From sequence record NC_030884.1: a DNA stretch of 32,995 bases. One strand, written 5' to 3'. Position numbers and translations under genes: made by a program. Shown here piece by piece: positions 3,581 to 31,434 of this stretch. The notes under the pieces were generated by a model. The model saw only the letters and a program-made list of their open reading frames with translations, ran no database searches and had not been told where the DNA came from. Each line of letters starts with the position of its first letter. The stretch's first letter is position 1.

Positions 3581-3612
3581 GTTTTTACATATATAAGAAT
3601 GAGGTAAGAAAA

Positions 3613-6428: not shown

Positions 6429-6471
6429 AAGCTCTTGTGCAGTTTAAGACATAAATAAAGACTCAAAACTA

Positions 6472-6489
6472 ATACATAATATAATGTAT
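6472..6489. promoter_or_regulatory. Palindromic element ATACATAATATAATGTAT upstream of the transporter/TGT operon
   Basis: Member of the ATACATwATATwATGTAT family (also 11525, 20747 and partial sites). Confidence 0.6.
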
Positions 6490-6664
6490 ATGATGTCTCC
6501 TTTTTGTAAGTAAAACTTCATTAAATTCTTATTGACAATAACAAAATTTTTTTATATAAATTTCATAGCAAGTAAATCAAACCATATACATTATATAATA
6601 TATATGATATATAGCTTTAGAAATAAGTTGATAAAAAAAAGAAAATATCTTTAATTTGGTTTTT

Positions 6665-6835
6665 TTAACCGCCTCGTTTTTGCAAATACTCTCTTATTGC
6701 TTCTTCTATAGCTTGAGTTAATTGAAGATTATTTTTTGCACAGTATACTTTCAGTCTAGTTTTCAAATCCTTGTCCATATAAATTCCAAATACTGCTTTT
6801 TGCTTCTTTTTTTGACTCTGTTCTTGAGTTTGCAT
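6665..6835 (-). CDS. svtR: Ribbon-helix-helix repressor SvtR (56 aa from ATG 6835)
   Basis: MQTQEQSQKKKQKAVFGIYMDKDLKTRLKVYCAKNNLQLTQAIEEAIREYLQKRGG matches recalled SIRV1 ORF56b; RHH pattern. Confidence 0.9.
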   Translation of the reverse strand: MQTQEQSQKKKQKAVFGIYMDKDLKTRLKVYCAKNNLQLTQAIEEAIREYLQKRGG

Positions 6836-6859
6836 TTTTCCTCGTTTGTTCATTTTGAT

Positions 6860-6882
6860 TTATGACATTTTTATATCTTTTT
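6860..6882 (-). promoter_or_regulatory. GTC-type promoter of svtR, embedded in the rep 3' end
   Basis: AAAAAGATATAAAAATGTCATAA identical to 7665..7687 and 10093..10115. Confidence 0.75.
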
Positions 6883-7219
6883 TTGTCTTTATCATATATT
6901 TATATACATTTTTTATATCACTTATATTTTTTGGAATTAATTCGATTCTTATATCAGTATGAGGAGGCATATGTTTGTGAACTCTAGAATAATCCAGTTT
7001 TTTATTCGTGAAAACTAAAATATGATAATGAAGACCATTTGAATTTTTTGTGGTTTCCTTTATAGAAAATACATGTGAATTTTTGTCATGATTATAAATA
7101 TAACTACGAAATTTTTTAAAAATTTTTTCAGTATCTCCATATTTATAATTAGTTGCAATAGTAATGAAATAAGTATAAGTATAAGAAAAATGAAAATTTA
7201 AAACTTTTTTCAAATCCAC
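6860..7219 (-). CDS. rep: HUH-family Rep endonuclease (119 aa from GTG 7219)
   Basis: Motif 1 FITI, motif 2 LHYHIL, motif 3 YKYMIK; matches recalled SIRV ORF119; the 192-aa track call is an over-extension. Confidence 0.9.
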   Translation of the reverse strand: MDLKKVLNFHFSYTYTYFITIATNYKYGDTEKIFKKFRSYIYNHDKNSHVFSIKETTKNSNGLHYHILVFTNKKLDYSRVHKHMPPHTDIRIELIPKNISDIKNVYKYMIKTKKDIKMS

Positions 7220-7320
7220 AATATTACGTGCGGAAATGACGTTTAAAAACTTATGTCGACAGAAAGGCGAAAGGTTTAAAAATGTATAATCACAAATTTT
7301 TATAAGCGAGGTGGCTAGAG

Positions 7321-7587
7321 ATCCAGCGTAGAAAGTATATATGCCTAAGAGTTCCAAGTGAAGTAAAACAAATTTTTTACGAAAAAAGAGAAGAGATAAA
7401 AAAACAATTAGATGATATTTTAGAAGGAAAAAGAACACTAGAAATTAAAGAAACTGCAGATTTATATGATGAAAAAGTATTCTTTACAGTAGATATGTTA
7501 TATTATGCGAAATTGCAAGAATTATCAAAAAAATATAAAAAACCATTATCGAAAATAATCAGATCTGTATTCTTTAATCTAAGTTAA
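7321..7587 (+). CDS. Cryptic tandem RHH-like protein (~88 aa) lacking a canonical start codon
   Basis: Stop-free frame 7306..7587: IQRRKYICLRVPSEVKQIFYEKREEIKKQLDDILEG..EKVFFTVDMLYYAKLQELSKKYKKPLSKIIRSVFFNLS; SD-like GAGGTG 7308..7313; T-rich tract after stop. Confidence 0.6.
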   Translation: MQRRKYICLRVPSEVKQIFYEKREEIKKQLDDILEGKRTLEIKETADLYDEKVFFTVDMLYYAKLQELSKKYKKPLSKIIRSVFFNLS

Positions 7588-7612
7588 ATCTTTTTTTTCT
7601 TTTTCTTTTTTA
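7588..7612 (+). terminator. T-rich terminator after the cryptic RHH ORF
   Basis: ATCTTTTTTTTCTTTTTCTTTTTT immediately after TAA 7587. Confidence 0.6.
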
Positions 7613-7664
7613 TTTCTCATATTATATATTGGAAATTCTATATTTCTCTTCATATTATGAAATT

Positions 7665-7687
7665 AAAAAGATATAAAAATGTCATAA
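7665..7687 (+). promoter_or_regulatory. GTC-type promoter of the SSB-ATPase-nuclease operon
   Basis: TATA-like ATATAAAAAT followed by GTC, the rudiviral promoter trinucleotide as recalled from SIRV transcription work. Confidence 0.75.
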
Positions 7688-7714
7688 TTAAAAGATATTT
7701 TTAGAGGGAGAAAC

Positions 7715-8110
7715 ATGGCGTCCCTTAAACAAATACTGGATGAATTAGGAAAACAAGCTAAAGAACAAAACAAGATAGCTAGTAGAATTTTAAAGATAAA
7801 GGGAATAAAAAGAATTGTTGTACAATTAAATGCGGTTCCACAGAATGGTTCAATAAGATATTCAATGACAATCCATAGTCAAAACAATTTCAGGAAACAA
7901 ATTGGAATAACGCCACAAGACGCAGAAGATTTAAAATTGATTGCAGAGTTTCTAGAGAAATATGCAGACTTTCTTAATGAATATGTAAAGTTTACTCCAA
8001 GGAATAATAGCACAGTTCAAGAAGAAGAACTAGACATGGAGCAACAAGAAGAAAAAGAAGAAAAACCTAGTACGAAAAGCAGAAAGAAGAACGTAGAGGA
8101 GGAGTTTTAA
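7715..8110 (+). CDS. Single-stranded DNA-binding protein (SIRV ORF131 family)
   Basis: Matches recalled SIRV2 gp17 family; acidic low-complexity C-tail ending VEEEF typical of SSB partner-binding tails; first gene of the operon. Confidence 0.8.
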   Translation: MASLKQILDELGKQAKEQNKIASRILKIKGIKRIVVQLNAVPQNGSIRYSMTIHSQNNFRKQIGITPQDAEDLKLIAEFLEKYADFLNEYVKFTPRNNSTVQEEELDMEQQEEKEEKPSTKSRKKNVEEEF

Positions 8111-8135
8111 AACGTCATAAAGTCATTTTTTTTTC

Positions 8136-9458
8136 ATGAATGAAACTACACAACAGAATCTTCAATTATTTGAAAAGTTAAAAAGTCATTCTTTTTTTTA
8201 TAATCCAAGAGATAATGAAAGAATTTTAAGTCTAATTCTTGGCGAAAAACAAGTTGAAGAAAATAAGAAAATTGAGATTTTGAAAGCTTACAAGAGAGGA
8301 ATTGATTCTCAATATTTTAGTGCTAATTTGCCATATTATAACGAAATAAAATTTATAAGTAAAATTACTGGATTTAAAGTTAAAGATGATCTAGTAATTG
8401 CAAAATTTCAAAATGGTTTTACTGGAGATTTTGATCCACATGAAATTGCTGATAATCCAGATGATTTTTATAATCTTATTTCTTCATATATGTTTGTAAA
8501 GATCAAAAAAGGATCAGAAAACTGGTTTATTGATGAAATATTTTCTATAGAACCGCCTAATAATTTTGAAATTGCAAAAGAAATTCTAGAAGAAGCTGAT
8601 AAACAACATTTAACTTATGCTATTCTATTGCAAGCTTTTGGATATGATTCACAAAAGATGGATTCAGATGATATTTTCTTAACTTTACCACGATTATTCC
8701 CACTTTTCAAATCTCCAATTACTAAAAGACAGATAAACACAATAGAAATTTCAAATAGAGGTACTGGAAAAACTACAACATTTATGATTTTACAAGAAGT
8801 TTTCAATTTTCGTTATTATACAGAACCTCCAACTTATGCAAATTTGATCTATGATGCTAGAAATAATATGTACGGTTCAGTATTTTTATCAAACGGATTA
8901 ATTTTTGACGAAATACAAACTTGGAAAGATGGATATGCAGTTAAAGAATTAAATTCTATAAATTCTACATTATCTACTGGAATTGAAAATTGCATTTGGA
9001 CAAGAGGAGCAGGTACAGAAAGTAAATCTGCTACAATTCAAAAATGTATTCCAATTATTTATGCTGGAAATCCTTTCTCTTTAACTTTAGATAAATATCA
9101 AACTCCAGATATAGAATCATATTTACAACAATATGAAATTTTTACGCCGGCAATTTTAGATAGAATTCATATTATTCAATTAGCAATTAAGAAAACTTAT
9201 GATAAAATAATAAATGCTAGAGTTCTTTATCCTTCAATTCTAAGAGCATTAGTGGAATTAATTCAGGAAAAAATTAACAGAACTACAAATTATGCGGACT
9301 GTGGAAATCTAGAAAGTAGAAGAAAAGAACAATCTATAGATATTCAAATACTTTTACAAGCTTTAGATATAGATTTGCAAATTGGAAAAGTTTCAAATGA
9401 AGAAGTATGTAATAAAATTGTAAATCTAATGAGATTTAGCAATTTAGGAGGATGGTGA
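8136..9458 (+). CDS. AAA+/P-loop ATPase (SIRV ORF436/440; annealing/helicase-like)
   Basis: Walker A SNRGTGKT, Walker B LIFDE, sensor AGNP, arginine-finger-like ILDRI. Confidence 0.88.
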
Positions 9459-10075
9459 AAATGAATTATGAAGATCATATAAAAGAAAGTTTTAAAGTTA
9501 AATATCCTAGTGATACAATTTTTCCAAGTGAAGTTGGTATTTGTTATAGAAAAAGCTATCTTGCTAGAAATATTGAATTTGAGAGAGGAATAAATGAAAT
9601 TTATCTTGATCTAGGAGAACAATATCATGAGAGAATTGAACAATATTTTAAAGAAAAATTGAATTGTCAAACTGAAGTTGAAATTAAAGATGAAGTTGAG
9701 GGAATGAAAATTAGCGGTAGAATTGATATAATTTGTAATAATGACTTATTGGAAATTAAAACAATTAGTTATAATTATTTCCAAGTAAAAGAATATCATT
9801 TATACCAAGTCGCATTATATTATCATATTTTGAAAAAGCAAAATTATCAAATCAATAATGTATATATTATATATTTAAATAGAAACACTAGAGAAGTTAA
9901 GCAATTTAAAATTGATGAAAAAGTTTTAGAAAATTATTATCAAAAAGTTATTGAATGGATAAAGAAATTTAAAGAATATCTAAAAGAAACAGATTATAAA
10001 AAAGTTCCAGGAGTTAATAATTATATCTGTAAATCTTGTGAGTTTAAGCAAAAATGCATTATATCACTTTTTTAA
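9452..10075 (+). CDS. Cas4-like RecB-family nuclease
   Basis: [31 protein letters not shown] and C-terminal [10 protein letters not shown] Fe-S cysteines. Confidence 0.92.
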
Positions 10076-10092
10076 TGAAAAAATAGAAGAGT

Positions 10093-10115
10093 AAAAAGAT
10101 ATAAAAATGTCATAA
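10093..10115 (+). promoter_or_regulatory. GTC-type promoter of the ORF81-RHH operon
   Basis: Identical 23-mer AAAAAGATATAAAAATGTCATAA. Confidence 0.75.
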
Positions 10116-10138
10116 TATAAAATGTAAAAATAGAGAAC

Positions 10139-10384
10139 ATGAGTCAAGTAGAAGAAGTCATAAAAAGTTTAAATAAAAAAGATATAAAAGATATAATAAC
10201 TAAAAATATTAATTTTTTAGTAGAACCACAAATTCTATTTTATGCAAAAAAGAGAAATAGGATAGTAGGATATCTAGAAATCAATAATAAACATTATCGT
10301 TTTGAATTGATATTTAGCAAAGATAATAGCGTAAGTATAACAGTTGGAGAAATAATAGTTTTCGGGAGCAGTGATTTGAAATGA
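10139..10384 (+). CDS. Conserved rudiviral hypothetical protein (81 aa)
   Basis: Own promoter; stop overlaps the next start (ATGA). Confidence 0.75.
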   Translation: MSQVEEVIKSLNKKDIKDIITKNINFLVEPQILFYAKKRNRIVGYLEINNKHYRFELIFSKDNSVSITVGEIIVFGSSDLK

Positions 10385-10560
10385 TGAAGATTGTCACATT
10401 TAAAATTCCAGATGAAATGTTACTATTACTAGAGGCTTATGCTATGAAACATAAGATGAACAGGTCAGAAGTAATAAGGTTAGCAATAGAGAAATTAGTA
10501 GTAGACGAAATGAAAAATGAACCAGTTCCAAAAGCTAAAGTTGAAAAAATAAAGTTATGA
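10381..10560 (+). CDS. 59-aa ribbon-helix-helix (CopG-like) regulator
   Basis: Not in ORF track; MMKIVTFKIPDEMLLLLEAYAMKHKMNRSEVIRLAIEKLV is a classic RHH; ATGA coupling with upstream ORF. Confidence 0.88.
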   Translation: MMKIVTFKIPDEMLLLLEAYAMKHKMNRSEVIRLAIEKLVVDEMKNEPVPKAKVEKIKL

Positions 10561-10609
10561 AAAGTGCATAAAATATCCATAAAAAATAAGATATTATTTT
10601 TTTGATTTT

Positions 10610-11086
10610 TTAATCATTTTTTGCTAAAGTTACTCCTTTTTGACCTTGATATTTTCCGTTATATGGCTTTTCGACTGGCGTTATAGTTCTTGCAAAAATT
10701 AAGTGTAAAAATCTTTCTCCTGTTTTTAGTTTTACTGGAATTGAAGAACCAACAAGTTCTATAGTTAATTGTCCTTCAAATCCCGCATCTACTATAGTCG
10801 GCGGAATTAATAATCCTTTTCTTGCAAATGTAGATCTTAAATTGCAAAATGCTATAATATCATTTGGTAATTTTATATATTCTTTAGTTGTTAAGAGAAC
10901 ATGTTCATATGGATAAATTATAAATTCATCTCTTATTTCTTTCGTCATATTTTCTTTTATTCTAACTATTTCATTTCCAATTTTTAAGTCTACTCCATTT
11001 TCTCTAATTGTATCCTCACTTAAAGGTTCAATTACAAGTCTATTTAAATTTATATATCTTTTTATATCTCTATCTGATAAAATCAT
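10610..11086 (-). CDS. dut: dUTPase (trimeric dUTPase/dCTP deaminase fold)
   Basis: [49 protein letters not shown] motifs. Confidence 0.93.
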
Positions 11087-11092
11087 CTTTTC

Positions 11093-11404
11093 TCAGTTCT
11101 TATTTTCAGTTTCTGACATATTTATTTCTCCACAAATTACTGAGATTTTAAACATATTTCTATCATATCTCCAATTTACTTTTATATAATTTGGATATTT
11201 GAAAGTATGAACTAAATATTTTAAGATAGACATTCCAATTTTTTCGTATTCTTTCTTCTTCATATTTATTTTTATTTGTATTAATATTATTTCTTCATCT
11301 TCAAAAACATTAAAGAAATAAATATTGTCAGAGTATCTACTTTCTAACCAATTTCGAAATTGAATTATATATTTTCTACACTCATTCTTTATATCAATTT
11401 CCAT
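11093..11404 (-). CDS. Conserved hypothetical protein (103 aa), co-transcribed with dut
   Basis: 6-nt gap to dut; GTC-type promoter at ~11421..11433(-). Confidence 0.75.
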   Translation of the reverse strand: MEIDIKNECRKYIIQFRNWLESRYSDNIYFFNVFEDEEIILIQIKINMKKKEYEKIGMSILKYLVHTFKYPNYIKVNWRYDRNMFKISVICGEINMSETENKN

Positions 11405-11523
11405 ATTTTAGTTAGAACAATATGACAATTTAATAGTTTTTCGTATTCTATGATATAGTCTATGATATAATATATAATCTCCGAAATTATTTTCATATTA
11501 TTTTTTGCAAATGTTAAACGTGA

Positions 11524-11543
11524 TATACATAATATTATGTATA
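11524..11543. promoter_or_regulatory. Perfect 20-bp palindrome upstream of the capsid gene
   Basis: TATACATAATATTATGTATA, flanked by ACGTGA direct repeats. Confidence 0.7.
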
Positions 11544-11592
11544 AGACGTGAAAATTTATTAATTTCAAATCATTAATTGTAATTGACCAAAT

Positions 11593-11997
11593 ATGGCAAA
11601 AGGCAGAACGCCAAGAAGTTATTCACAAAGGTACGCGAAATGGCAAGCTAAATTTAACGCATTTTCTAATCCAACAGTCGCTAGTACTATATTGTCAAAT
11701 GTAGCTCCAGTTGCCCAACAAAATTTCCAGACTAATGTACCTAAGTTTACCGCGATAAATGAAAATGTTAGTGCAGTATTATCACAATATGGAATAACTG
11801 GTCCTAACAGGGCAGTTTATCAAGGTTTTGCATTAAAGATAGCTAGAGCACTTAATAGGATTGGTGGTGGCCCGGCATTAGTAAATATGATTAGCGGTTT
11901 GAAAGCATATTATATTTCAGCCTTTAACGCAAATCCACAAGTTCTTGACGCTGTAGTTAATATTATAACTGGAAGCCCAACTGGATATGTAAGTTAA
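11593..11997 (+). CDS. Major capsid (DNA-wrapping) protein, 134 aa
   Basis: MAKGRTPRSYSQRYAKWQAKFNAFSNPTVASTILSNV..SPTGYVS matches the recalled rudiviral MCP. Confidence 0.97.
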   Translation: MAKGRTPRSYSQRYAKWQAKFNAFSNPTVASTILSNVAPVAQQNFQTNVPKFTAINENVSAVLSQYGITGPNRAVYQGFALKIARALNRIGGGPALVNMISGLKAYYISAFNANPQVLDAVVNIITGSPTGYVS

Positions 11998-12027
11998 AAT
12001 ATTTAAGCTATTTTTTTCTTTTTTTCT

Positions 12028-12195
12028 TTATTCTTCTTCAGCCTTTATTTCTATATATTCTCCAGTTCTTAAACTTATCCTTCTACAATTAGATAATTTT
12101 AAATTTTTATTATGCTTTCTTAAATGAGTAACCATACTTTTTCTTTTTATATAAATTTTTCCACAAATTGGGCATTCATATCCTAAAAGTGCCAT
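12028..12195 (-). CDS. 55-aa C2H2 zinc-finger protein (from ATG 12195)
   Basis: YECPICGKIYIKRKSMVTHLRKH = C-x2-C-x12-H-x3-H. Confidence 0.85.
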   Translation of the reverse strand: MALLGYECPICGKIYIKRKSMVTHLRKHNKNLKLSNCRRISLRTGEYIEIKAEEE

Positions 12196-12327
12196 AGCGA
12201 TAAATTTGGATTTGACATTTTTAAATGCTATTAAATCCAATCAACCATATACATTATATTTATTATATGAATTATAGGTTAAGTTATCAGTCAGCTTTAT
12301 TTTTGTCATAATTTTTAGATTTCAATT

Positions 12328-13335: not shown

Positions 13336-13377
13336 TATAAATTTGTCATAATACATAATATATAATAGTGATAGGAC

Positions 13378-13518
13378 GTGAAGCTAAAAATAATATGCGA
13401 AAAACTAACGACATTTCATGTAAATTCTGAAGATCAAGAATTAATAGATAGAATAATAAAAATGTGTAATGATTATAATTTAAATTATAAAATTGAATTT
13501 GAATATAATAAGAAGTGA
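13378..13518 (+). CDS. 46-aa hypothetical protein
   Basis: Not in track; GTG start, MKLKIICEKLTTFHVNSEDQELIDRIIKMCNDYNLNYKIEFEYNKK; GTC-type promoter at ~13336..13349; stop abuts the next gene's SD. Confidence 0.6.
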   Translation: MKLKIICEKLTTFHVNSEDQELIDRIIKMCNDYNLNYKIEFEYNKK

Positions 13519-13523
13519 TAAAA

Positions 13524-13718: not shown

Positions 13719-13726
13719 AAAAAATT

Positions 13727-13954: not shown

Positions 13955-14279
13955 CTTCACTTTCCTCCTCAGATAATTCAAAATTTGCAGTACTATTAAT
14001 TTGTTTCGCGTAAGGTTGAGGATAAACCACGCGAAAATCATCTATAAAAATTTGCTTAGTTTGTTGATCTTGAATTATAGAAAATTGAAAATAAAAAGTA
14101 AATCCAGGAATATATAAATCTACAATAAGCGGATAATCAATAGTTTTCATTACAATTATTGAATTTGGTAAAAAACGCGATAAACCATAAATTTGACCTC
14201 TCTGTTCAAGTTCACGAATTTTATCTATCGCAATTCTAACAACTCCAAAAATATTTTGAAAAGGATCTTCAATTTTCAT
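13947..14279 (-). CDS. Conserved hypothetical protein (110 aa)
   Basis: 8-nt overlap with the downstream gene; palindrome-family element upstream at 14326..14351. Confidence 0.78.
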   Translation of the reverse strand: MKIEDPFQNIFGVVRIAIDKIRELEQRGQIYGLSRFLPNSIIVMKTIDYPLIVDLYIPGFTFYFQFSIIQDQQTKQIFIDDFRVVYPQPYAKQINSTANFELSEEESEDE

Positions 14280-14368
14280 ATGATATCTTTTATCTCAAGC
14301 CGTTAAAAAATATACAAGTAGCATAATACATATATATTATATAATGTATATAGTGTTTAGATTTTGTG

Positions 14369-15757: not shown

Positions 15758-15843
15758 AACTATCAATTTATATACCTCAACTAGAAAAATAAACTTACAA
15801 ATTGCATAATGTATATAAATGTCATACATTATTGAGTTAATAA

Positions 15844-16308: not shown

Positions 16309-16314
16309 TAGAAA

Positions 16315-17494: not shown

Positions 17495-20400
17495 ATGAGT
17501 TTTCTATTGAATTTAGGTGAGTTAGGAACATTCTTTGCAGATGAAATTGAAAATTTGGAAAATTTCACAAACTGGATATCTAGTGATTTTATAAATTTTA
17601 TTAATGCAATAGTTAATGATATCAAAAATATTACAAGTTTCCTAGGACAAGCAATTTCCGATATTCCTACTTTTATGACAAATATTGCAACTAATTTCTT
17701 AACAATTTTACAGAATTTTGTACAAACTGCAATTTCTACAATTCAAGGATTTGTTTCATGGTTTGAACAACAAGTTGTAGGAGCTTTTGAATTTCTATCC
17801 TCAATTGCGTCTGATTTCATAAATTCAGCATATTCATTTTTCCAAAATGTAGCTAACGCATTTGCACAAATTATATCAGGAGTAATTTCCGATTTTCTGA
17901 ACTTTTTCGGAGCTAATATGAAACATATTTCTAATGCAATTTCTCAACTTACTCAATTTTTATCACCATTTATTGCTCCAATTACAATTGGAAAATTCTT
18001 ACCAGTTATTGTAGATAAATTAGCTGAAATTTTACCAGAAATAGAAATAGATTTAGCTCCAGTTGGATTAGGCGGAAAAATTCCAATTAAATTTGGAGAA
18101 ATTATAAAAGCTTTTGCAGAAACTTCAGTAGATTTTTTAAATGAAATAAGAACTGAACTTGCTATAACTTTAAAAGAATTTATAAAAGAACCATTTATTT
18201 CAGATTTTAAAATTACAGCGAGAGAAATATTTAATGAAATTGGTTTGGGCGATTTGCCATTTGCAGATCCGCCATTTGTACAAATTGGAAGATGGGTAGC
18301 TGTAAGGTCTTTTGAAGAAATTAAAGATCACTTAAAAGAAACAATATTGCTAACTGGTTATCCAGCTTGGTTTACTAATGCTTATCTAGAACCTCCAGTT
18401 AATGATTTCGCTCCTAAAAATCCATTATTTAGACCTGTAGGAATTCGCGATCTAATCTTAGGGACACAATATGGAATTTTAAACATTTCAGATCTTGAAA
18501 AATATGCATATAACAATTTATTAACTCCAAAAACTGCAAAATTAATGTATCAAAACCAAACTGCTAGACTTTTACAAAGAACTGTAGAGCAAGGGATTCG
18601 ACAATTTATTATTACTCCTCAAAAAGCTTATGAAGAAATAATTCAAAATGTTAATTTAACTGGTAAAGAATTATTTCTAAAAACTTTCACATTAGAATAT
18701 GAATATGCAGTTCAGAGAATTGTTAGACAATTTTTAAGATCATTATTATCTAGAGCTTTATCAAATTTTGGAAGACCGTACCTTGATTTTAAATATTTAG
18801 ATGATACAATTGCTAAATTATTTAAAGATCTAGGATATCCAGAAGAAGTAAGAACAGTTTTCGATACTATGATCACACAATCTCAGTTAATTTATACTAA
18901 TCAACTTCTATTAAGACAATTACAACAAATCGTTAGGTTAGGAATTTTTGATCAGAAAAAGATTAAAGAAGAATTGAAAGCTAATAAATTTAATGAACAA
19001 ATAGCATTACAAATTTTAGAAAGTGAATTACAATTTGCACAATTGCAAAATATACTAAAAGAATATCAATTCAAACTTAAAAGTTTTCTAATTTCTCCAA
19101 GAGATTTAGAAAAAGATCTAAAACATATTGGATTTGATTCTGCAATTATTTCAGCTTTGATTTACGAAAATCAAACAGAACAACTTATAAAGTTTCAATT
19201 ATCAAATCTAGAAAGTTTAGCGAAAAAAGGCTATTTATCTTTAGATGAAATCAAAAAGCAATTTAAAGCAATTGGAATAATAAAAGAATATGAAGATGCA
19301 TTTATAAACTTTATAAATCAAGAATTACAAATATCTGCATTTTTGACAATTTTAAAGAGTCAATTAAGACAATTCCAAATAGATTCAAAAATTGCAGAAG
19401 TAGAATTGAAGAAATTGAATATTAATGAATATCTGCTAAATCAGATAATTCAAGAAGAATATAACATAAATATCGCAAAACTACAATTAAGCGTAATTGA
19501 AACAATTGCGAAAACTTTATACTATGATCAACAACAATTATCTGGAGAATTAGGAAAAATAGTAAAAGATAAAACAGCTCTTGATTTATATAATCAAAAG
19601 TTTTATTACGAATACATATATCCAAAAATTATTAATTATCATCTCCAATTGGCTAGACATGGAATTCTTTCAGATATTTCAAAATTACCAAAAGAAGTTA
19701 TAGAATATGAAATTAAGCCTGCATTATTGACTTATCAAACTACGCTAGAAATTGAGTATATAAAAGAATCATTAAAAGATTTGGAAATTAAGCCAGATAA
19801 CGCAATAAATGAACTAGAGAAATTAGGAATGCAGAAAGATATAGCTCAATTAATTGTAAATACTTATATTCCGACATTTTATAACGTACATACAATAATT
19901 CAAAATGTTATAGAAGGTCAATTATATAAAGTCGGGAAAGTTCCAATAAATCTAGGAAATGCAGAAAGTGAACTAAGAAAACTAGGAATTCCTGATAATC
20001 AAATAAAGATTCTTCTAGAACAATATGCTAGTACTTTTGGTCTTGAAATTTGGAGAAGACATTTGCCTTCAATTTCCATAATTGAAAATGCAATAAAGTA
20101 CAATTATCTAGATCAAAAATTAATAGAATATAGCTTTATCCCATCTGAATTATTGAATTTGTATGTAAACTATTATCAACATTTACTAGTAGCACAAGAA
20201 GTACAATCTTTCAAATCTGAATACATAACTGCATTAATTTATAATTATCAGAATTTACAATTTGAAAGTTTGTTAAAACAATATGGAATTAATGAAGCAT
20301 TATTAAATGTAATAAAATTATTTGCACAAGTAAGAAAAATTGTGACAGGCTTACAAGAACTATATCTAACGCCGACAAAAGCACTTTCAATTAGCGAATA

Positions 20401-20671
20401 TGTATCAAATCCACAACAATTACTACAGAAAGTATTTACAGAATTCCAGATTCCGCAAGAGTTACAAAATACATATTTTGAATATGCAAGAAATAGAAGA
20501 GTTAGCAGATATGTTAATGAAATAATTACTACAATTAGCTTACTATTTGAGAAACATAAAATAGATCTTAATACTGCACAATCTTATCTTCAACAATTGA
20601 AGAAATATGGATTAACTGATGAAGAAATTCAATTGATAACACTCAATTGGCAATTAAGAAGTGCTTACTAA
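17495..20671 (+). CDS. Terminal (tail) fibre protein, SIRV ORF1070 family; start 17459 or 17495
   Basis: Largest ORF, amphipathic N-terminus and helical repeats; size and position match the recalled fibre protein. Confidence 0.88.
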   Translation: MSFLLNLGELGTFFADEIENLENFTNWISSDFINFINAIVNDIKNITSFLGQAISDIPTFMTNIATNFLTILQNFVQTAISTIQGFVSWFEQQVVGAFEFLSSIASDFINSAYSFFQNVANAFAQIISGVISDFLNFFGANMKHISNAISQLTQFLSPFIAPITIGKFLPVIVDKLAEILPEIEIDLAPVGLGGKIPIKFGEIIKAFAETSVDFLNEIRTELAITLKEFIKEPFISDFKITAREIFNEIGLGDLPFADPPFVQIGRWVAVRSFEEIKDHLKETILLTGYPAWFTNAYLEPPVNDFAPKNPLFRPVGIRDLILGTQYGILNISDLEKYAYNNLLTPKTAKLMYQNQTARLLQRTVEQGIRQFIITPQKAYEEIIQNVNLTGKELFLKTFTLEYEYAVQRIVRQFLRSLLSRALSNFGRPYLDFKYLDDTIAKLFKDLGYPEEVRTVFDTMITQSQLIYTNQLLLRQLQQIVRLGIFDQKKIKEELKANKFNEQIALQILESELQFAQLQNILKEYQFKLKSFLISPRDLEKDLKHIGFDSAIISALIYENQTEQLIKFQLSNLESLAKKGYLSLDEIKKQFKAIGIIKEYEDAFINFINQELQISAFLTILKSQLRQFQIDSKIAEVELKKLNINEYLLNQIIQEEYNINIAKLQLSVIETIAKTLYYDQQQLSGELGKIVKDKTALDLYNQKFYYEYIYPKIINYHLQLARHGILSDISKLPKEVIEYEIKPALLTYQTTLEIEYIKESLKDLEIKPDNAINELEKLGMQKDIAQLIVNTYIPTFYNVHTIIQNVIEGQLYKVGKVPINLGNAESELRKLGIPDNQIKILLEQYASTFGLEIWRRHLPSISIIENAIKYNYLDQKLIEYSFIPSELLNLYVNYYQHLLVAQEVQSFKSEYITALIYNYQNLQFESLLKQYGINEALLNVIKLFAQVRKIVTGLQELYLTPTKALSISEYVSNPQQLLQKVFTEFQIPQELQNTYFEYARNRRVSRYVNEIITTISLLFEKHKIDLNTAQSYLQQLKKYGLTDEEIQLITLNWQLRSAY

Positions 20672-20746
20672 CAATTTCTAAACATCATATACATTATATA
20701 TTTTATATAGTGTATGGGTTACGTTATCACATGCAAAACAACTCAT

Positions 20747-20764
20747 ATACATTATATAATGTAT
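20747..20764. promoter_or_regulatory. Perfect 18-bp palindrome ATACATTATATAATGTAT
   Basis: Upstream of the minor structural genes; a 16-bp direct copy TCATATACATTATATA also lies at 20685..20700. Confidence 0.7.
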
Positions 20765-20807
20765 TAGATTTGATTTTTTATTTACCGCATTTTTGATATA
20801 TTATATC

Positions 20808-22505
20808 ATGCCTTTGCCATACAAGATGAGTTACAAATTACCGTTAGAATATCTATCATTACAAGACTGGAACAACTTTGTTCAGAATTTAATATTTATA
20901 AATCAATACGGTACAGCTAAATTATTACAATATTATCAAAATGGTAATTTTCAAAATCTAAAAGATGTATTTGCAAAATATTTATATGTAGCACAATTGA
21001 AAGTTAATGGATATAATGTATTATATAATTTGGCAAAACCACTAGCGTATACTTTTGGAAATGTTTTTCAAGAACTCGCAAATAGACCTACCGTCGAATT
21101 ATCTGAAGTTATTGTTCCGCCTCCTTCACTTAGCTATAATATAAATTATAAATTACCAACTATAAAAAAGCAAATAGAAGTATTAATTCCTAATTTAATT
21201 TCTAAAATTGTAATTCCTAACGTCATAGCCGGCACACAATTTATATTTTCTGGAAATTCGAATTTAGCACAACTAACATCTCAATATTTACAATCTGGAT
21301 ATCTTCAAACTTGGAGAAGTATAACATTACAAAATTTAGGAAATAATTCAATTCAAATAAATAATTCGATTTATTTAATGCCTAAACAATGTTTGAAAAT
21401 TACAGTTTCAAATCCGCAAGAAGTACAAATTTCAGCACAAAATCCTACTTTGGTAAGTGAATTAATTGAATTTGGTGCAATACTAATTACTGCTTATACA
21501 ATTACAATTACAAATTCTCAACCTGATCCAACTTCAAGTCCATTTCAACAATTGCTAATTTTGAATTTATCAAACATAATTTCTAGTCCTTCACAATTAC
21601 TTAATTTACAATTTTGCTTAGATTCTCAGTGTCAAACGCCATTATATGCTTGGATTGAAAGTTATAATTCCAATTTATCAAACGTTTATATCTGGATTAA
21701 TTTACCAATTTCAATTCCCGCAAATTCTTCAATTACAATTTATATGTTTGTAAGAAATTCAATTCAATATCCTTATACTGGACTGAGATCGGATTTATCT
21801 CAGACTTATGCACAATATGATAATGGAAAAAATGTATTCTTAATTTATTTTAACGGAAATGAACCATTATCAAATTTTGATACTTTTGGAAATACAATTC
21901 AACAAATTTCTACAACTGGGCCATTAGGAAATCAAATAAATGCAATATATTTATCTGGATATTCAAATAATGTTGGATTTGTTTATATTGGAAAAAGTGT
22001 ACCAAATCAACCAGTAATTGCAGAATCTTCAACAATAGACCTAGGAAATCAAGCTGGAGGATTAGGAGCTAATAACGGTATGGCGGGAATTGCAGATAAT
22101 ACAAATACATCTTCTATAAATGCAATTGGAGTAACTATGGGATATAGTAACTCATATTTTTCTCAATCATATTATATAAATGGCAGTGAAACTAATGATT
22201 TAAATCAACAAGGTAGTGCAGTTTCACAGTGGGTTTATGCATGGGTTTATTATTACGGATCTTCAGCTAGTTCATGGTATGGATGTATAGCTCCACAATT
22301 CTATAGTTCTGCCGGCGGATATTGTGGAACAGTTAATAATAACCCACTTTCTAGTTCTACACAATTATATTTAAGTGCTATTGGTTCTGTTAGCTCAGGC
22401 TTTTGGTGGCAAACAGCTTGGAATTTCATGAGAATGAGGACTTATCCGCCTAACGGCGTAATGCCGTCTAACACAAATCCTCAATTAACTGCAATTTATA
22501 GTTAG
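20808..22505 (+). CDS. Minor virion protein (SIRV ORF562/564 family) with DUF2341-like/lectin-like C-terminal domain
   Basis: PFQQLLILNL..PLYAWIESYN..IWINLP.SIPANSSITIYM resembles DUF2341; ATG 20808 or 20826 more plausible than TTG 20793. Confidence 0.75.
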   Translation: MPLPYKMSYKLPLEYLSLQDWNNFVQNLIFINQYGTAKLLQYYQNGNFQNLKDVFAKYLYVAQLKVNGYNVLYNLAKPLAYTFGNVFQELANRPTVELSEVIVPPPSLSYNINYKLPTIKKQIEVLIPNLISKIVIPNVIAGTQFIFSGNSNLAQLTSQYLQSGYLQTWRSITLQNLGNNSIQINNSIYLMPKQCLKITVSNPQEVQISAQNPTLVSELIEFGAILITAYTITITNSQPDPTSSPFQQLLILNLSNIISSPSQLLNLQFCLDSQCQTPLYAWIESYNSNLSNVYIWINLPISIPANSSITIYMFVRNSIQYPYTGLRSDLSQTYAQYDNGKNVFLIYFNGNEPLSNFDTFGNTIQQISTTGPLGNQINAIYLSGYSNNVGFVYIGKSVPNQPVIAESSTIDLGNQAGGLGANNGMAGIADNTNTSSINAIGVTMGYSNSYFSQSYYINGSETNDLNQQGSAVSQWVYAWVYYYGSSASSWYGCIAPQFYSSAGGYCGTVNNNPLSSSTQLYLSAIGSVSSGFWWQTAWNFMRMRTYPPNGVMPSNTNPQLTAIYS

Positions 22506-22514
22506 TGATCTAGA

Positions 22515-24464
22515 ATGTCTTCTAATCTAGTTACTACTAGTTCATCAACTCAATCATTAACTCAATCATCAAATCAATATTCATATCCAATATCAACTTG
22601 TTATCCAATTACTTCATTTAGTAAATTACTGAATAAAATAGCGAAACAATCTTTAATTTCTTCACAACTTTGGAATGAAATAGTTCAAGATCTTTATACT
22701 GCATACTCAGTTTACAAATATATAAATACTTCATTTCAATATCTATTACAATATCAATTTTCATATGGAAATATATATACTCTTTATGATTTATTTAAAG
22801 ATATGTATTTTTATATTTCAAATTTAAAGCCATATCCATTTATTCCATTAATTCAAGCTAGACCTGGACTGCCTTTAACTATAGAATATATGAATAATTT
22901 AATAAAAGCAATTATAAAATTAGCAAATGAAAATAATATAGCATTAGCAAAATCTTTAAACTTTGTTCAGCCTAATGAAATTGTTAAATCTAGAAAATTT
23001 AACGATATCATATACACAGTTAAACAATTCCTAACTTTTGATTTTAATACTTATTTTCTATTAGATTGTTATGGTTCAATATTCAGTAATTTAGTAAATT
23101 CAAAATCGGCATTTTTAAATGTATTAATTTATAATCTTCAATATCCTATTAATGCTAATAATACATATATCAAAAATTTGATTATATATCAATTAGATAA
23201 TACTATATATCTTAATGGTTATTCAATTATTAATGATTTTCTAATTGGAACAAATAATGGAACTATTGTTTTAAATGATAACGCAATTATAGAAAATTTA
23301 ATATGTAGACAAAATTATGGAGAAATATTGATAAATGGAAATGCAATTATAATAAATAATAAATGTTTTACAGCATTATTTTCAACTACACTTCAACAAA
23401 CACTTCCAGATTCCATTTCCTTAAATGCTAGATACTTCTTACCTCCGAATAAAATAGTATTTCAATTAACTCCAGGAAGCACAGGTGATTACGCAGTATT
23501 AATAAATCCAGATGGTTCTGTTTCTGTATTACCTGATAATACTACGATAAATTCCAATACAGATTACAGTAATATAACCGGTTATTCTACGGTACCTGGT
23601 CTTATTGCATTTGGAGGCGGAGAAGAAGCTTATAATCCTTGGTCTCCATGTGCGGAACCATGTTCACCATATGTCGCATTTTACAATACTTCAACTCAAC
23701 AATTGTCAATTTTCAAAATTCCTGGTGGAAGTTGTGATAATATGAATACTTCATCAATTGTTAAAGGTAATAGTAATGATATAATAGCAATAGGTGGCGC
23801 TAACCCAGGATCTTTAACTGGTGGAACTGGATATGTAATTTTTAACTCATCATTATCACCATATTTATATGGAACATTTGCACTTACAGATTCAGCTGGT
23901 AATTCGTTATATTTATATAGAATGCCCAAAATAACTGTTGGAAACAATCTTTATTTAATAGCTGGAATTAATAATTCTAATACTATTGCAATAGAATATG
24001 TTCCATTACAACTTCTATATACCAACGGGCATAGTTATGCTAATGTATTATGTAACAGTGAAACTATAACTCCAAATTATATAACAACTATTACAAATGA
24101 TTTTAACTATGAAGGAATATTATCTATATATACAGACGGTACAAATATTTATTTTGTATATTATTCAACTAATGGATATGTAAAATTAGTAATATTTGAC
24201 ACATTCACGAATACTGTCATATCTATTAAACAATTAATTCAATTATCAAATAATAGTTCAACTTTTACTATCGCTAACGGATACGTATATGTATCCGTAC
24301 AACAAACGAATTCATTTACTGTATATAAATTTGATTTAAATGGAAATTTAATAACATCAAAAAGTTTTACAGGAACTGGATTTATAGATATGAATGGATA
24401 TATAGTACAGTTTACAAATGGACTAAATGCAGGTTCTAAAATTTTAGTTTATCCGCCGTTCTAA
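22515..24464 (+). CDS. 649-aa probable virion/receptor-binding protein (helical N-terminus, beta-helix-like repeats, beta-rich C-terminus)
   Basis: Operonic with the upstream structural gene; Asn/Ser/Thr/Tyr-rich with many N-x-S/T sequons. Confidence 0.7.
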   Translation: MSSNLVTTSSSTQSLTQSSNQYSYPISTCYPITSFSKLLNKIAKQSLISSQLWNEIVQDLYTAYSVYKYINTSFQYLLQYQFSYGNIYTLYDLFKDMYFYISNLKPYPFIPLIQARPGLPLTIEYMNNLIKAIIKLANENNIALAKSLNFVQPNEIVKSRKFNDIIYTVKQFLTFDFNTYFLLDCYGSIFSNLVNSKSAFLNVLIYNLQYPINANNTYIKNLIIYQLDNTIYLNGYSIINDFLIGTNNGTIVLNDNAIIENLICRQNYGEILINGNAIIINNKCFTALFSTTLQQTLPDSISLNARYFLPPNKIVFQLTPGSTGDYAVLINPDGSVSVLPDNTTINSNTDYSNITGYSTVPGLIAFGGGEEAYNPWSPCAEPCSPYVAFYNTSTQQLSIFKIPGGSCDNMNTSSIVKGNSNDIIAIGGANPGSLTGGTGYVIFNSSLSPYLYGTFALTDSAGNSLYLYRMPKITVGNNLYLIAGINNSNTIAIEYVPLQLLYTNGHSYANVLCNSETITPNYITTITNDFNYEGILSIYTDGTNIYFVYYSTNGYVKLVIFDTFTNTVISIKQLIQLSNNSSTFTIANGYVYVSVQQTNSFTVYKFDLNGNLITSKSFTGTGFIDMNGYIVQFTNGLNAGSKILVYPPF

Positions 24465-24941
24465 TCATAATTTACAAAATACAAATTCTCTATTATCATC
24501 AGTTATAAAAGTTAGAATTGTTCCATATAATTTTCTCAACAAATCAAATCTATTCTCTGTCCAATCATGAATTGCTATACAATATTGTTTGTACTTTTGT
24601 AATTTAGAAAAATCTAGATTTTTTTCGCAACCTTCACAATCCATAATGAAAATATCACTGTCAGGATATTCGTTACTTTTCCATTCCTCATGAATTTCAA
24701 CTTTATCACAAATCTTGAATTCTTTACAAATTTTTTCTTTAAAAATTTGATTTAGTTTCTCTTCTTTTTCAAATCCAATTATCTTTTTAGCACCTTTTAA
24801 AAGAAAATATAAAGCAGAACTACCACAGTCATTACCAATTATTGTAATTGTTTTATCTTTAACATCTAATTTTGAATAAGCATATTCGAATTCTCTCCAA
24901 TAACAACACTGTAATTTACAAAAATAATCATCAAAATTCAT
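24465..24941 (-). CDS. SAM-dependent methyltransferase (FkbM-like)
   Basis: Motif I ITIIGNDCGSSALYF, acidic GFEKE, IMDCEGCE (FkbM-type xDxEGxE). Confidence 0.8.
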   Translation of the reverse strand: MNFDDYFCKLQCCYWREFEYAYSKLDVKDKTITIIGNDCGSSALYFLLKGAKKIIGFEKEEKLNQIFKEKICKEFKICDKVEIHEEWKSNEYPDSDIFIMDCEGCEKNLDFSKLQKYKQYCIAIHDWTENRFDLLRKLYGTILTFITDDNREFVFCKL

Positions 24942-25771
24942 GTTTGAACTACCTCAAATAGAGCATAAACTTTACATTTTCCAGTTGCCCAAGCGTAAAC
25001 ATTAGCTGGATTTCTAACATGAAATTCTAAACTATCACCGGGCAAGATTGGAAAACTGTTGTACAATTGATTACCAATATAAACTACATAATTACTCAAA
25101 TTCTGGAGAATTATCCTAACAGTTTCTAATGTTGAACCGCTATAAAGTGGAGAAGGAACTGTCGATAAATTAATTTGTAAACCTTCTATAGTTGGAGGAG
25201 ATAAATATAATGTTAATTTATTTAAAGTATTAGCTAATCCGACAGTAGCTAAATAGAAATATGTAAATGTATAAGCTACAAAATCTGCAATTTGATAAAG
25301 TGTAATTGTTGTAGATTTTTGTAATTGTTTAACTTGTGAAACTAAAGAATAAAATAAATCAGAAACAGATTTATAAATTAAATCTGAAATAGTTCTATAT
25401 AAATTTGTATATAAATCATATGAAATTTGTTTTGGTAATTTAGAAATAGAATAATAAAGTTGTTGATTTGAATATAGAATTTGATTTATTTGTTGATTTG
25501 CAGTTGAGATAAATCCAGCTATATAAATTGGATCTTGTTCTGTAAGAACTGGTTGACCAGAAACATAGACTTCATTTTTGAAAAATCCAGCTAATGCATT
25601 TACGCTATTCGGGATATATAAATTTCCATTTTGTAGAATTGAAGTTAATGAATTTCCACCGGTTTCATAGAGTTGATATAGAAGTAATGTAGCAGTGTTC
25701 CACATGCTAGAAGTTAGTCTTTGGAATGGACTAGCTAAAAGTGAAGAAATTGAAGTATAAGTTACACTCAT
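24938..25771 (-). CDS. 277-aa hypothetical, probable virion-associated protein
   Basis: Shares LTSSMWN and ILQNL..NP modules with the 20808 and 22515 proteins; ATGA-coupled to the methyltransferase. Confidence 0.72.
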   Translation of the reverse strand: MSVTYTSISSLLASPFQRLTSSMWNTATLLLYQLYETGGNSLTSILQNGNLYIPNSVNALAGFFKNEVYVSGQPVLTEQDPIYIAGFISTANQQINQILYSNQQLYYSISKLPKQISYDLYTNLYRTISDLIYKSVSDLFYSLVSQVKQLQKSTTITLYQIADFVAYTFTYFYLATVGLANTLNKLTLYLSPPTIEGLQINLSTVPSPLYSGSTLETVRIILQNLSNYVVYIGNQLYNSFPILPGDSLEFHVRNPANVYAWATGKCKVYALFEVVQT

Positions 25772-25878
25772 ACAATTTTAATAAGTAATTGACTAAAATA
25801 AAGTGTCACATCTTATAATTCATATAATAAATATAATGTATATAGTTTGTTCTCATTTAGATCATTTAAAATTAAAAT

Positions 25879-31411: not shown

Positions 31412-31434
31412 TTTTTACTCACCACTTACATATA

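Follow-up and report, generated by a model that had tools for sequence, protein, structure and literature searches.

A palindrome conserved upstream of virion-gene promoters in SIRV3 and other rudiviruses as a candidate regulatory site

The Sulfolobus ara-box is a dyad-symmetric upstream activating site situated just upstream of the BRE. The same position is occupied by the dyad element of Methanocaldococcus known as the Ptr2 UAS (as cited in PMC1635249). Such sites recruit TBP/TFB to promoters that would otherwise be weak. The palindrome considered here differs from both in that its sequence and factor are unrelated to theirs and its own activator is only proposed. In rudiviruses, the element of early (anti-defence) genes with the proposed regulator Aca8 (PMC11065993) resembles the palindrome in being specific to a promoter class, in defining a temporal gene set and in the logic of its discovery, namely conserved upstream DNA with divergent genes; it is located around the strong TTTAWATA/BRE core of terminal early genes, whereas the palindrome lies upstream of the TTTATTTA cores of central virion genes. 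The SvtR operator of SIRV1 is also a virus-specific cis element of structural-gene promoters (ORF1070), an imperfect dyad with a dimeric binder, but has another sequence, and its targets, gp08 itself and gp30/ORF1070, are both devoid of the palindrome. The aCcr1-box/gp21 motif (PMC9976892, PMC9976878) is likewise a short AT-rich palindrome, with a GTA/TAC core, and is bound by a rudivirus-encoded dimeric RHH protein.

The same virus group and the same promoter as for the palindrome are concerned in the case of Sta1 (SSO0048), a wHTH host protein of the Lrs14 family that binds as a dimer. According to Kessler et al. 2006 (PMC1635249), one of its two footprints of ~20 bp is located roughly 30 nt upstream of the core of SIRV1 promoter 134, this promoter is stimulated in vitro, and activation takes place when TBP or TFB is limiting. 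Genes 134 and 399 are singled out there as probably regulated ('could be under transcriptional control'), and neither a perfect 18-bp palindrome nor a regulon is described in the text consulted.

The window studied (32,995 nt, NC_030884.1) corresponds to the whole genome of Sulfolobus islandicus rod-shaped virus 3 (SIRV3). The 18-bp palindrome ATACATWATATWATGTAT is present there in three exact copies (6472-6489, 11525-11542 and 20747-20764), and five copies are found when one mismatch is allowed, the one-mismatch pair being at 6586-6603 and 14332-14349. Chance occurrence was estimated from 2000 dinucleotide-preserving shuffles of intergenic DNA only (6.58 kb, 19-22% GC). The three exact 18-mers compare with a mean of 0.000, the five with up to one mismatch with 0.003, six with up to two mismatches with 0.034, and seven 12-mer half sites with 0.03; all these forms are absent from the 26.4 kb of coding DNA. 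A description of the palindrome motif was not found in the searchable literature. The sole C and G of the motif are its most informative positions (2.4 bits), which favours base-specific read-out over mere AT-richness.

The full, one-mismatch and stretched sites listed by the first-pass annotation were found at the same coordinates in the SIRV3 sequence, and its 23-mer at 6584-6606 is indeed the exact reverse complement of 14329-14351. The comparison with shuffled AT-matched intergenic DNA that it had suggested came out in favour of enrichment, for exact and one-mismatch copies alike, and its statement that all sites are intergenic agrees with the GenBank annotation. The 'stretched' site at 14326-14349 reads ATACAT-N12-ATGTAT, and the 12-mer half site TATACATTATAT occurs at 12248, 20688 and 25831-25842 (- strand). 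A further half site proposed near 13351 did not hold, as it has one arm only and closely follows a leftover TATAAATTTGTCATAAT promoter, SIRV3 lacking the gene to which that promoter belongs (ORF156 in SIRV2 and SIRV1-XX); for these reasons it was left out of the site set. The sites and the neighbouring promoter elements are as follows.

6448..6459, - strand: TATA box and GTC of ORF399, TTTATTTATGTC, at 12 nt from the palindrome on its downstream side; the ATG follows after ~27 nt
6472..6489, no strand: ORF399 proximal site, perfect N6 palindrome ATACATAATATAATGTAT, promoter of ORF399 (permease)-TGT310, genes on the - strand
6586..6603, no strand: ORF399 distal site, one-mismatch palindrome ATACATTATATAATATAT, 114 bp upstream of the proximal site
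11525..11542, no strand: capsid gene site, perfect N6 palindrome ATACATAATATTATGTAT, upstream of the major capsid gene ORF134 (+ strand)
11548..11562, + strand: BRE and TATA box of the capsid gene, GTGAAA ATTTATTAA, matching the first part of Reg2, an oligonucleotide of the Sta1 paper
12249..12272, no strand: ZnF55/GT335 site, N12 variant ATACAT-TATATTTATTAT-ATGAAT between divergent genes
14326..14349, no strand: ORF110 site, with the one-mismatch N6 site at 14332-14349, genes on the - strand
20689..20715, no strand: ORF565 distal site, degenerate, ATACAT...GTGTAT
20747..20764, no strand: ORF565 proximal site, perfect N6 palindrome ATACATTATATAATGTAT, promoter of ORF565 (minor virion protein)-ORF649 (+ strand)
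20774..20784, + strand: ORF565 TATA box, TTTTTTATTTA
25818..25841, no strand: ORF277/ORF209 site, N12 variant, on the + strand ATTCAT-ATAATAAATATA-ATGTAT

The centres of the N6 sites are ~52-61 nt before leaderless start codons: 52.5 nt for ORF399 (ATG 6428; site and distance are the same in SIRV1 and SIRV2) and for the proximal site of ORF565 (ATG 20808), 59.5 nt for the capsid gene (ATG 11593), and 61.5 nt for ORF110 (ATG 14279), at whose promoter the extra ATACAT arm (14326-14331) is specific to SIRV3. Three sites lie between divergent genes, in accordance with the earlier remark that several would be found at divergent promoters. The capsid site is also 129.5 nt from the divergent hyp103; the second is 65.5 nt from ATG 12195, probably the real start of the zinc-finger gene, and 67.5 nt from the GT335 ATG 12328; the third is 58.5 nt from ORF277-MTase158 (-) and 49.5 nt from ORF209-GT356 (+). 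A 30-mer at the last of these is identical to the element at 12247-12276. The distal element of ORF565, degenerate in SIRV3, takes the N12 form, 107.5 nt from the ATG, in SIRV1 and SIRV1-XX with one arm mismatch and in SIRV2 with two. The distal site of ORF399 is followed on the - strand by a second conserved BRE/TATA-like block (6549-6563), to which no conserved ORF belongs, and may represent an upstream promoter or a second operator.

The palindrome is located 11-12 nt upstream of a BRE/TATA region (TTTATTTA, often followed by GTC, a virus-specific element reported for SIRV promoters in PMC5569661), and the gap between its end and the BRE is from 5 bp (capsid gene) to ~6 bp. A separate TATA box is found ~27 nt before each ATG, and the start codons have no Shine-Dalgarno leader. 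The Reg2 oligonucleotide, representing Sta1 protected region 2 of promoter 134, begins with AATTTATTAA and lies 10 bp beyond the palindrome in the downstream direction; we read Reg2 as the region that PMC1635249 places in the core promoter, so that our assignment of the capsid-gene TATA box agrees with that paper.

The palindrome was rejected as a TATA box or BRE, its centre being 52-61 nt and not ~26 nt upstream of the leaderless ATGs, the putative starts. A related suggestion, that it is a symmetric core promoter with a central TATATAA-like box and BRE-like arms, working in one or both directions to give long-leader or antisense RNA, seems to us quite improbable. Several site centres do read TATATAA, ATACAT fits five of the six positions of RNWAAW, the Sulfolobus BRE consensus, and the AT-rich spacer of an N12 variant sits where the ORF209 TATA box could be. 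However, the centre of the capsid site, AATATT, is a poor TATA box, sites 6472 and 20747 have no gene on the other side, every unit has a better-placed TATA box, often with GTC, and the core of gene 134 lies downstream of the palindrome on our reading of the Sta1 paper.

About eight transcription units carry the palindrome, comprising virion and morphogenesis genes: the capsid protein, ORF565-ORF649, GT335, ORF209-GT356, ORF110-ORF75, ORF277/methyltransferase, ORF399-TGT and the divergent zinc-finger gene. These units are presumably expressed late. The palindrome is absent from all early 'class A' promoters of SIRV3, as the first-pass annotation had noted. Its claim that the motif marks core genes was borne out for a coherent virion and morphogenesis set but not for core genes generally: promoters of other types serve the replication genes, ORF1070, the pyramid (VAP) gene and, in SIRV3, also the ORF486 virion-protein gene. 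A lone ATACAT hexamer was seen downstream of the TATA box in three class A promoters.

Comparison of two clades, Icerudivirus and Usarudivirus, revealed identical centre-to-ATG distances in the Icelandic viruses SIRV1/2/3 and the North American SIRV4/8 for ORF565 (52.5), the capsid gene (59.5) and ORF110 (61.5). At or next to the palindrome, the best 18-nt window has an inter-clade identity of 0.81-0.93; most of the flanking DNA has 0.2-0.5. The capsid-gene palindrome is kept in SIRV1, 2, XX, 4 and 8 and, with one mismatch, in SSRV1, MRV1 and ARV3, hoswirudiviruses infecting three other host genera. The ORF565 site is retained at 52.5 nt in SIRV1, 2, 4 and 8, despite a protein identity of only 49% between the clades, and the ORF110 promoter has at 61.5 nt a perfect N6 palindrome in SIRV4 and a one-mismatch site in SIRV8. 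The GT335 N12 element at 67.5 nt also occurs in SIRV1, SIRV2 and SBRV1, and N12 forms were found at orthologous promoters of SBRV1 and SRV. The exact 18-mer is carried by 105 IMG/VR loci, of which 39 are rudiviral. The earlier proposal to look for conservation in other rudiviruses has thus been answered by a sequence and a position kept across genera in spite of diverged flanks. Preservation at the same places in viruses of other continents suggests that the palindrome is very probably a docking site of a dimeric transcription factor that would control these genes.

The fixed distance to TATA box and ATG across genera is left unexplained if the palindrome is a structural DNA or RNA element, such as a cruciform or hairpin serving replication, resolution, packaging or termination, and this explanation appears scarcely credible. 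It would account for the perfect dyad symmetry and for identical 23- to 30-mers at different loci, but hairpin stability is low (-3 to -9 kcal/mol at 37 C, z-scores mostly within noise), the host grows near 78 C (PMC5537682), and A/T exchanges at the centre sometimes break the pairing. Terminator-like features were not found in 6300-6900, the one region scanned. A hairpin or intrinsic terminator was rejected, as a stable G+C-rich stem-loop with a T run was not observed.

The upstream footprint of Sta1 on SIRV1 promoter 134 appears to fall about where the palindrome lies, which lends some indirect experimental support to the host factor that the first-pass annotation gave as an alternative. The centre of the palindrome is 34 bp upstream of that of the published Reg2 core-promoter oligonucleotide, and no other protein is known to have been footprinted near this position. 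The Sta1 consensus ATNT-N8-WNAT has a match in every palindrome (ATATACATWATATWAT), but, unlike the palindrome, it is degenerate and ignores the conserved C and G; with 13.7 matches per kb of intergenic DNA it is non-discriminating. Promoter 56, which has only a half site, was likewise bound and stimulated by Sta1, and a stimulation of promoter 399 was not reported (PMC1635249). Proteins of the Lrs14 family are now considered to bind AT-rich DNA with little specificity (PMC11841832).

Archaeal repressors typically act at the TATA box or the start site, and the palindrome, being upstream of the BRE, overlaps neither. This weighs against its being an operator of a dimeric repressor, either viral (for example, an early/middle RHH or zinc-finger protein) or of the host, as does the in vitro activation of promoter 134 by the only factor known to footprint there (PMC1635249). 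Such a repressor would spread or bend DNA over the BRE/TATA, keeping virion genes off until it is titrated by replicating genomes or degraded. We consider this unlikely, while noting that most characterised archaeal-virus regulators repress, that SvtR acts from ~80 nt off the TATA box, presumably by polymerising along DNA (PMC5569661), that the end of the palindrome is so close to the BRE, and that several promoters have two elements 55-114 bp apart, which suits looping or cooperative binding.

Two viral proteins named as possible binders by the first-pass annotation find little correspondence in the sites. The published SvtR motif ATnnTTCAAnAnnnnnAAAATG (PMC5569661) is different, and no match to it overlaps a palindrome in SIRV3. 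The motif AGTATTA of the 59-aa RHH protein gp21 (PMC9976892) also differs; a scan for AGTATTA/aCcr1-box gave 17 genomic matches against 12.7 expected, none of them at palindromes, and the viral targets of gp21 are gp17 and gp20-21 (PMC9976892). Some palindrome sites contain TGTATTA, that is, six of the seven letters of AGTATTA.

We think it less likely than not that the virus, and not the host (through Sta1 or some other protein), supplies the binder; the viral candidates are the C2H2 protein ZnF55, the RHH protein gp21/ORF59 and some core protein not yet characterised. By tblastn, a ZnF55 homologue is confined to Icerudivirus and Usarudivirus, in which perfect sites are numerous, and its gene lies between the capsid gene and GT335, its own promoter abutting the N12 element; but SSRV1, MRV1 and ARV3 keep the palindrome, a C2H2 ORF was not found in SSRV1, and a single zinc finger is normally monomeric (PMC3541406). 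The gp21 protein is present in all rudiviruses, apparently essential, and AGTATTA occurs in only some of its bound targets, yet its known motif and viral targets differ from those considered here. A virus-borne factor would easily explain why the capsid palindrome is kept across viruses of four host genera; among the proteins compared, however, no phyletic pattern matches the distribution of the motif, and pull-downs with infected-cell extracts on promoters 134 and 399 gave no extra virus-specific protein (PMC1635249).

Considering the enrichment, the intergenic confinement, the fixed position relative to TATA box and ATG, the cross-genus conservation and the gene set, all of which are established, we regard the palindrome, with moderate confidence and on sequence grounds, as an upstream regulatory site (UAS or operator, activating by preference) of a virion-gene promoter class, recognised by a dimeric factor. 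The operator or activator role put forward earlier may therefore be retained in the form of a probable promoter-linked regulatory site. A dimeric sequence-specific protein would grip both ATACAT arms, the centres of which are 12 bp apart and thus roughly on the same helix face. It would occupy about -61 to -44 relative to the putative transcription start, immediately before the BRE, and could help TFB/TBP to assemble on TATA boxes of the TTTATTTA type (the early cassettes have a different type, TTTAAATA, for which strength has been reported in SIRV2); joint expression of virion-building genes would result. Both dimer binding and the activating effect are what we infer from this arrangement. 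A point against it is provided by the N12 variants, the arms of which are 18 bp apart on opposite helix faces, so that a single rigid dimer would not span both. The binder could equally be host Sta1 or a dedicated viral or host factor.

More tentatively, the palindrome may be the cis code of a dedicated virion-morphogenesis regulon of at least three rudivirus genera, read by a specific activator and not by generic Sta1; an unrecognised DNA-binding protein of the virus, or a host factor of the Sulfolobales exploited by the viruses, might play this part. If true, virion (presumed late) genes of a crenarchaeal virus would for the first time have a defined promoter code together with its regulator.

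The palindrome ATACATWATATWATGTAT, with arms ATACAT and ATGTAT around a six-nucleotide A/T centre, was rescanned through the genome of the rudivirus SIRV3, and all coordinates in the first-pass annotation proved correct. From its list of sites, only the half site near 13351 has to be dropped, being a single arm that comes after a leftover TATAAATTTGTCATAAT promoter. The 32,995 bp analysed match, at 100% identity, the complete genome of Sulfolobus islandicus rod-shaped virus 3 (SIRV3; KX712143 / NC_030884; Icerudivirus, Rudiviridae), which infects a hyperthermophilic archaeon.

Palindrome sites in the SIRV3 genome
6472: exact ATACATWATATWATGTAT (pattern scan)
11525: exact ATACATWATATWATGTAT (pattern scan)
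20747: exact ATACATWATATWATGTAT (pattern scan)
6586: ATACATWATATWATGTAT with one mismatch (pattern scan)
14332: ATACATWATATWATGTAT with one mismatch (pattern scan)
14326-14349: ATACAT-N12-ATGTAT

The segment 14329-14351 is the exact reverse complement of 6584-6606. Because the SIRV3 genome is very AT-rich (G+C about 25%; 13-31% in intergenic DNA), the statistics were redone on intergenic DNA alone, namely on 40 segments (6,582 nt), each shuffled 2000 times with dinucleotide content kept. Enrichment over such AT-rich DNA, on which the earlier proposal depended, is clear: the exact 18-mer was observed 3 times against 0.000 expected, the 18-mer with up to one mismatch 5 times against 0.003 and with up to two mismatches 6 times against 0.034, and the 12-mer TATACATTATAT 7 times against 0.03. 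In the 26.4 kb of SIRV3 coding sequence neither the 18-mer (exact or with up to one or two mismatches) nor the 12-mer was found.

Alignment of all SIRV3 upstream regions, anchored at the start codon, revealed three promoter classes. Class A belongs to the terminal early cassettes, has a long conserved GAGATAGAG...TTTAAATA block with a Shine-Dalgarno leader and is the anti-defence early promoter already described (PMC11065993). Class B consists of a TATA box with TGTCATA and stands ahead of SvtR, SSB, ATPase, hyp81, dUTPase, ORF154, TGT and a few other genes. Class C is that of the palindrome.

Transcription units with class C promoters in SIRV3
ORF399, with TGT310 downstream
Major capsid protein gene ORF134
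GT335 (glycosyltransferase) and the divergent C2H2 zinc-finger gene
ORF110 with ORF75
ORF565 with ORF649
ORF277 with methyltransferase gene ORF158
ORF209 with GT356, divergent from ORF277

ORF134 (SIRV2 Gp26) and, by gene order, ORF565 (Gp39) encode virion components, as does the ORF488 homologue (Gp33, also by gene order) (PMC5537682), which is preceded by the palindrome in the American viruses SIRV4 and SIRV8. In the aligned SIRV3 upstream regions no palindrome was found at ORF1070, the pyramid protein gene or the replication genes. We infer that the palindrome-marked genes are late. In SIRV4 (14251-14296) the annotated start of ORF30, the ORF488 homologue, lies 36.5 nt from the palindrome centre versus about 52 nt in SIRV8, and this start codon is probably mis-annotated.

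Several other features were seen in these upstream regions. The class A promoters (1500-1585, 2900-2994, 3520-3613, 29601-29690, 30907-31000 and 31411-31500) have in common a stretch of about 45 nt in which two GATAGAG repeats precede TTTAAATA; this repeat looks like the SSV1 F55 operator ATAGATAGAGT (PMC5569661), and a lone ATACAT directly follows the TATA box in three of these promoters. At 13336-13352, directly past the GT335 stop, there is an intact promoter with TATA box and TGTCATA (TATAAATTTGTCATAAT) and no gene behind it; its counterpart drives ORF156 in SIRV2 and SIRV1-XX, and SIRV3 and SIRV1, from which ORF156 is missing, appear to have lost the gene and retained the promoter. Between SvtR and ORF399 (6500-6610, minus strand) there is another promoter-like block (6549-6563, GAAATTTATATAAAAAAA), which is preceded by the 6586 element and shared with SIRV1 and SIRV2; no conservation is seen for the 17-codon ORF that follows. 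The block may be a small non-coding RNA or an upstream start for ORF399. Upstream of ORF154 (15795-15843), everted arms surround the class B TATA box (ATGTAT-ATAAATGTC-ATACAT) and lie inside ORF486, the divergent virion-protein gene, at its 5' end; the American SIRVs have a normal palindrome in the matching divergent region.

In the orientation of the gene that it precedes, the class C element reads (C/T)AT-ATACAT-WATATW-ATGTAT; 11-12 nt further on comes a TATA box of TTTATTTA, ATTTATTAA or TTTATTTTT type, often with GTC. According to Kessler 2004, the virus-specific element is reportedly the GTC after the TATA box. This trinucleotide is described as a virus-specific element of SIRV promoters (PMC5569661). 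The TATA box lies about 27 nt ahead of the start codon with no Shine-Dalgarno sequence between, so the transcripts would be leaderless or nearly so, and from this spacing the palindromes with a six-nucleotide spacer (N6) would lie immediately upstream of the BRE, at about -61 to -44. The palindrome is not the TATA box and is unlikely to be the core promoter itself; its dyad symmetry might also be read as an RNA or DNA hairpin, an unlikely explanation that was ruled out on energy grounds.

At ORF399, the capsid gene, ORF565 and ORF110 the spacer is N6 (12 bp between arm centres), and in the two divergent regions, ZnF55/GT335 and ORF277/ORF209, it is N12 (ATACAT-N12-ATGAAT or ATGTAT). ORF399 has a further, weaker element 114 bp upstream of the first, and ORF565 has one about 55 bp upstream. 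The ZnF55/GT335 N12 element stands 67.5 nt from the GT335 start and, when the zinc-finger start is placed at ATG 12195, 65.5 nt from that gene. The zinc-finger gene (12028-12240, minus strand) very probably starts there rather than at TTG 12240, the annotated start: ATG 12195 gives a 55-aa protein, as annotated in SIRV2, and has a TATA box with GTC at the usual distance upstream (12214-12226). An identical 30-mer N12 element, ATATACATTATATTTATTATATGAATTATA, was seen at different promoters (SIRV3 12247-12276 and 25814-25843; SIRV1 20212-20241), and its two spacer variants trade loci between viruses, a pattern that suggests exchange between promoter elements by gene conversion or recombination.

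Conservation is the strongest evidence for the palindrome. Its presence in other rudiviruses, a check proposed in the first-pass annotation, was confirmed at orthologous promoters of the Icelandic SIRV1, SIRV2 and SIRV1-XX and of the Yellowstone viruses SIRV4 and SIRV8 (Usarudivirus). Distances from its centre to the ATG are identical between these clades (ORF565, 52.5 nt; capsid gene, 59.5 nt; ORF110, 61.5 nt), and the ORF565 proteins share only 49% identity. In ungapped alignments anchored at the ATG, between-clade identity reaches 0.81-0.93 in the best 18-nt window versus 0.2-0.5 across most flanking DNA; for ORF565 and ORF110 most of the palindrome falls inside this window, and for the capsid gene the palindrome's end and the adjoining BRE/TATA block do. 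At the capsid gene the American viruses have another perfect site, 60 bp further upstream. Within Hoswirudivirus, the capsid promoter retains CATATACAAAATATTATGTATATG in SSRV1 (host Saccharolobus) and MRV1 (host Metallosphaera), and that of ARV3 (host Acidianus) has ATACATAATATTAGGTAT. SBRV1 carries an N12 element with perfect arms 67.5 nt ahead of the GT335 orthologue, and SRV has degenerate N12 forms ahead of the ORF110, ORF565 and ORF277 orthologues; no palindrome was found at such promoters of SMRV1 (47% G+C) and ARV1. The most informative positions across 65 non-identical sites from rudiviruses are the lone C and G of the arms (2.4 bits each), which argues for base-specific recognition.

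Outside known rudiviruses the motif is scattered. The exact 18-mer in IMG/VR gave 105 loci, 39 of which encode rudiviral proteins; the other 66 (G+C 0.23 to 0.46) are on the order of chance by a rough composition estimate. In 185,579 species genomes at least 120 loci were found, with no Sulfolobales among the matches listed, and a 20-mer scan of metagenomes also gave at least 120 loci, of which 24 of the 120 listed are rudiviral. Matches in STSV1 and ATV were weak and without promoter linkage, and a non-rudiviral metagenome match from a hot-spring-like project proved to be a CRISPR spacer. The metagenome contig Ga0208549_100445 (1400-1620) contains a CRISPR array with the repeat CTTTCAATTCCTTCTAGGATGCTTC and a spacer including the palindrome (…AAAGCATATACATTATATTATGTATA); by eye, this spacer is like the palindrome-bearing capsid-promoter region of American SIRV, and it looks to be of viral origin.

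The host protein Sta1 (wHTH, Lrs14 family) is one candidate binder. In the 2006 study, SIRV1 promoters 56, 134 and 399 pulled it down and SSV1 T6 did not; it stimulated promoters 56 and 134 and protected two regions of about 20 bp on promoter 134, one within the core promoter and the other some 30 nt upstream of it; the 30-mer Reg2, starting AATTTATTAA, is given there as part of protected region 2 (PMC1635249). In SIRV1 Reg2 maps to 11102-11131, which is 10 bp past the palindrome (11074-11091). It must belong to the protected region in the core promoter: if the core promoter lay another 30 nt along, it would overlap the start codon. By this mapping the literature supports the placement of the palindrome upstream of the core promoter at the capsid gene, and the upstream protected region would lie about where the palindrome does. 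Against Sta1 as the palindrome-specific factor are the mere half site at promoter 56, the lack of reported stimulation of promoter 399 (PMC1635249), a non-discriminating published consensus (13.7 matches per kb) and the present view of the Lrs14 family as nucleoid-associated proteins that merely prefer AT-rich promoters (PMC11841832).

The dimeric RHH proteins SvtR and gp21 (59 aa), previously suggested as binders, are disfavoured, since the published motifs of both miss the palindromes on scanning. SvtR represses its own gene and ORF1070 and has the consensus ATnnTTCAAnAnnnnnAAAATG (PMC5569661), which gave no SIRV3 match overlapping the palindromes. The aCcr1 homologue gp21 binds AGTATTA, a motif not present at the palindromes; the accessible text places gp17 and gp20-21 among its viral promoter targets and does not name the capsid promoter among the probes (PMC9976892). 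The C2H2 zinc-finger protein is suggestive by the position of its gene, and its occurrence, confined to Icerudivirus and Usarudivirus, fits motif presence in these two genera; against it, the protein has a single finger and was not found in SSRV1. No SIRV3 protein had a phyletic profile cleanly matching motif presence, and Pfam, PHROGs and PDB sequence searches detected no recognisable DNA-binding domain in the other small proteins (hyp81, hyp103, ORF110 and others).

In our opinion, a dimer would occupy both arms directly upstream of the BRE and could help to recruit TFB/TBP to virion-gene promoters of the TTTATTTA type, in the same position and by the same logic as archaeal activators such as Ptr2 and as Sta1. 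The main alternative is a repressor occluding the BRE or polymerising over it. The paired sites and the N12 elements of the divergent regions suggest that binding is of a higher order or that each arm is occupied separately.

Dyad-symmetric factor sites ahead of archaeal promoters are a well-known kind of object. The palindrome and its regulon appear new; in the literature searched, nothing relevant turned up on the motif or on a Sulfolobus factor matching it. Among rudiviruses, early anti-defence promoters have been described, with Aca8 as their proposed regulator (PMC11065993). An 18-bp site so sharply defined and deeply conserved, placed directly ahead of the BRE, gives a direct handle on the joint switch-on of virion genes, can be used as bait for its factor and predicts regulon membership, including the unknowns ORF110, ORF277 and ORF209. 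SIRV1 and SIRV2 are main models for archaeal virus biology. The 2006 Sta1 footprint merits re-examination in the light of the palindrome, which would offer Sulfolobus genetics a compact regulated promoter module and provide a clean test case for activator action on the archaeal TBP/TFB machinery.
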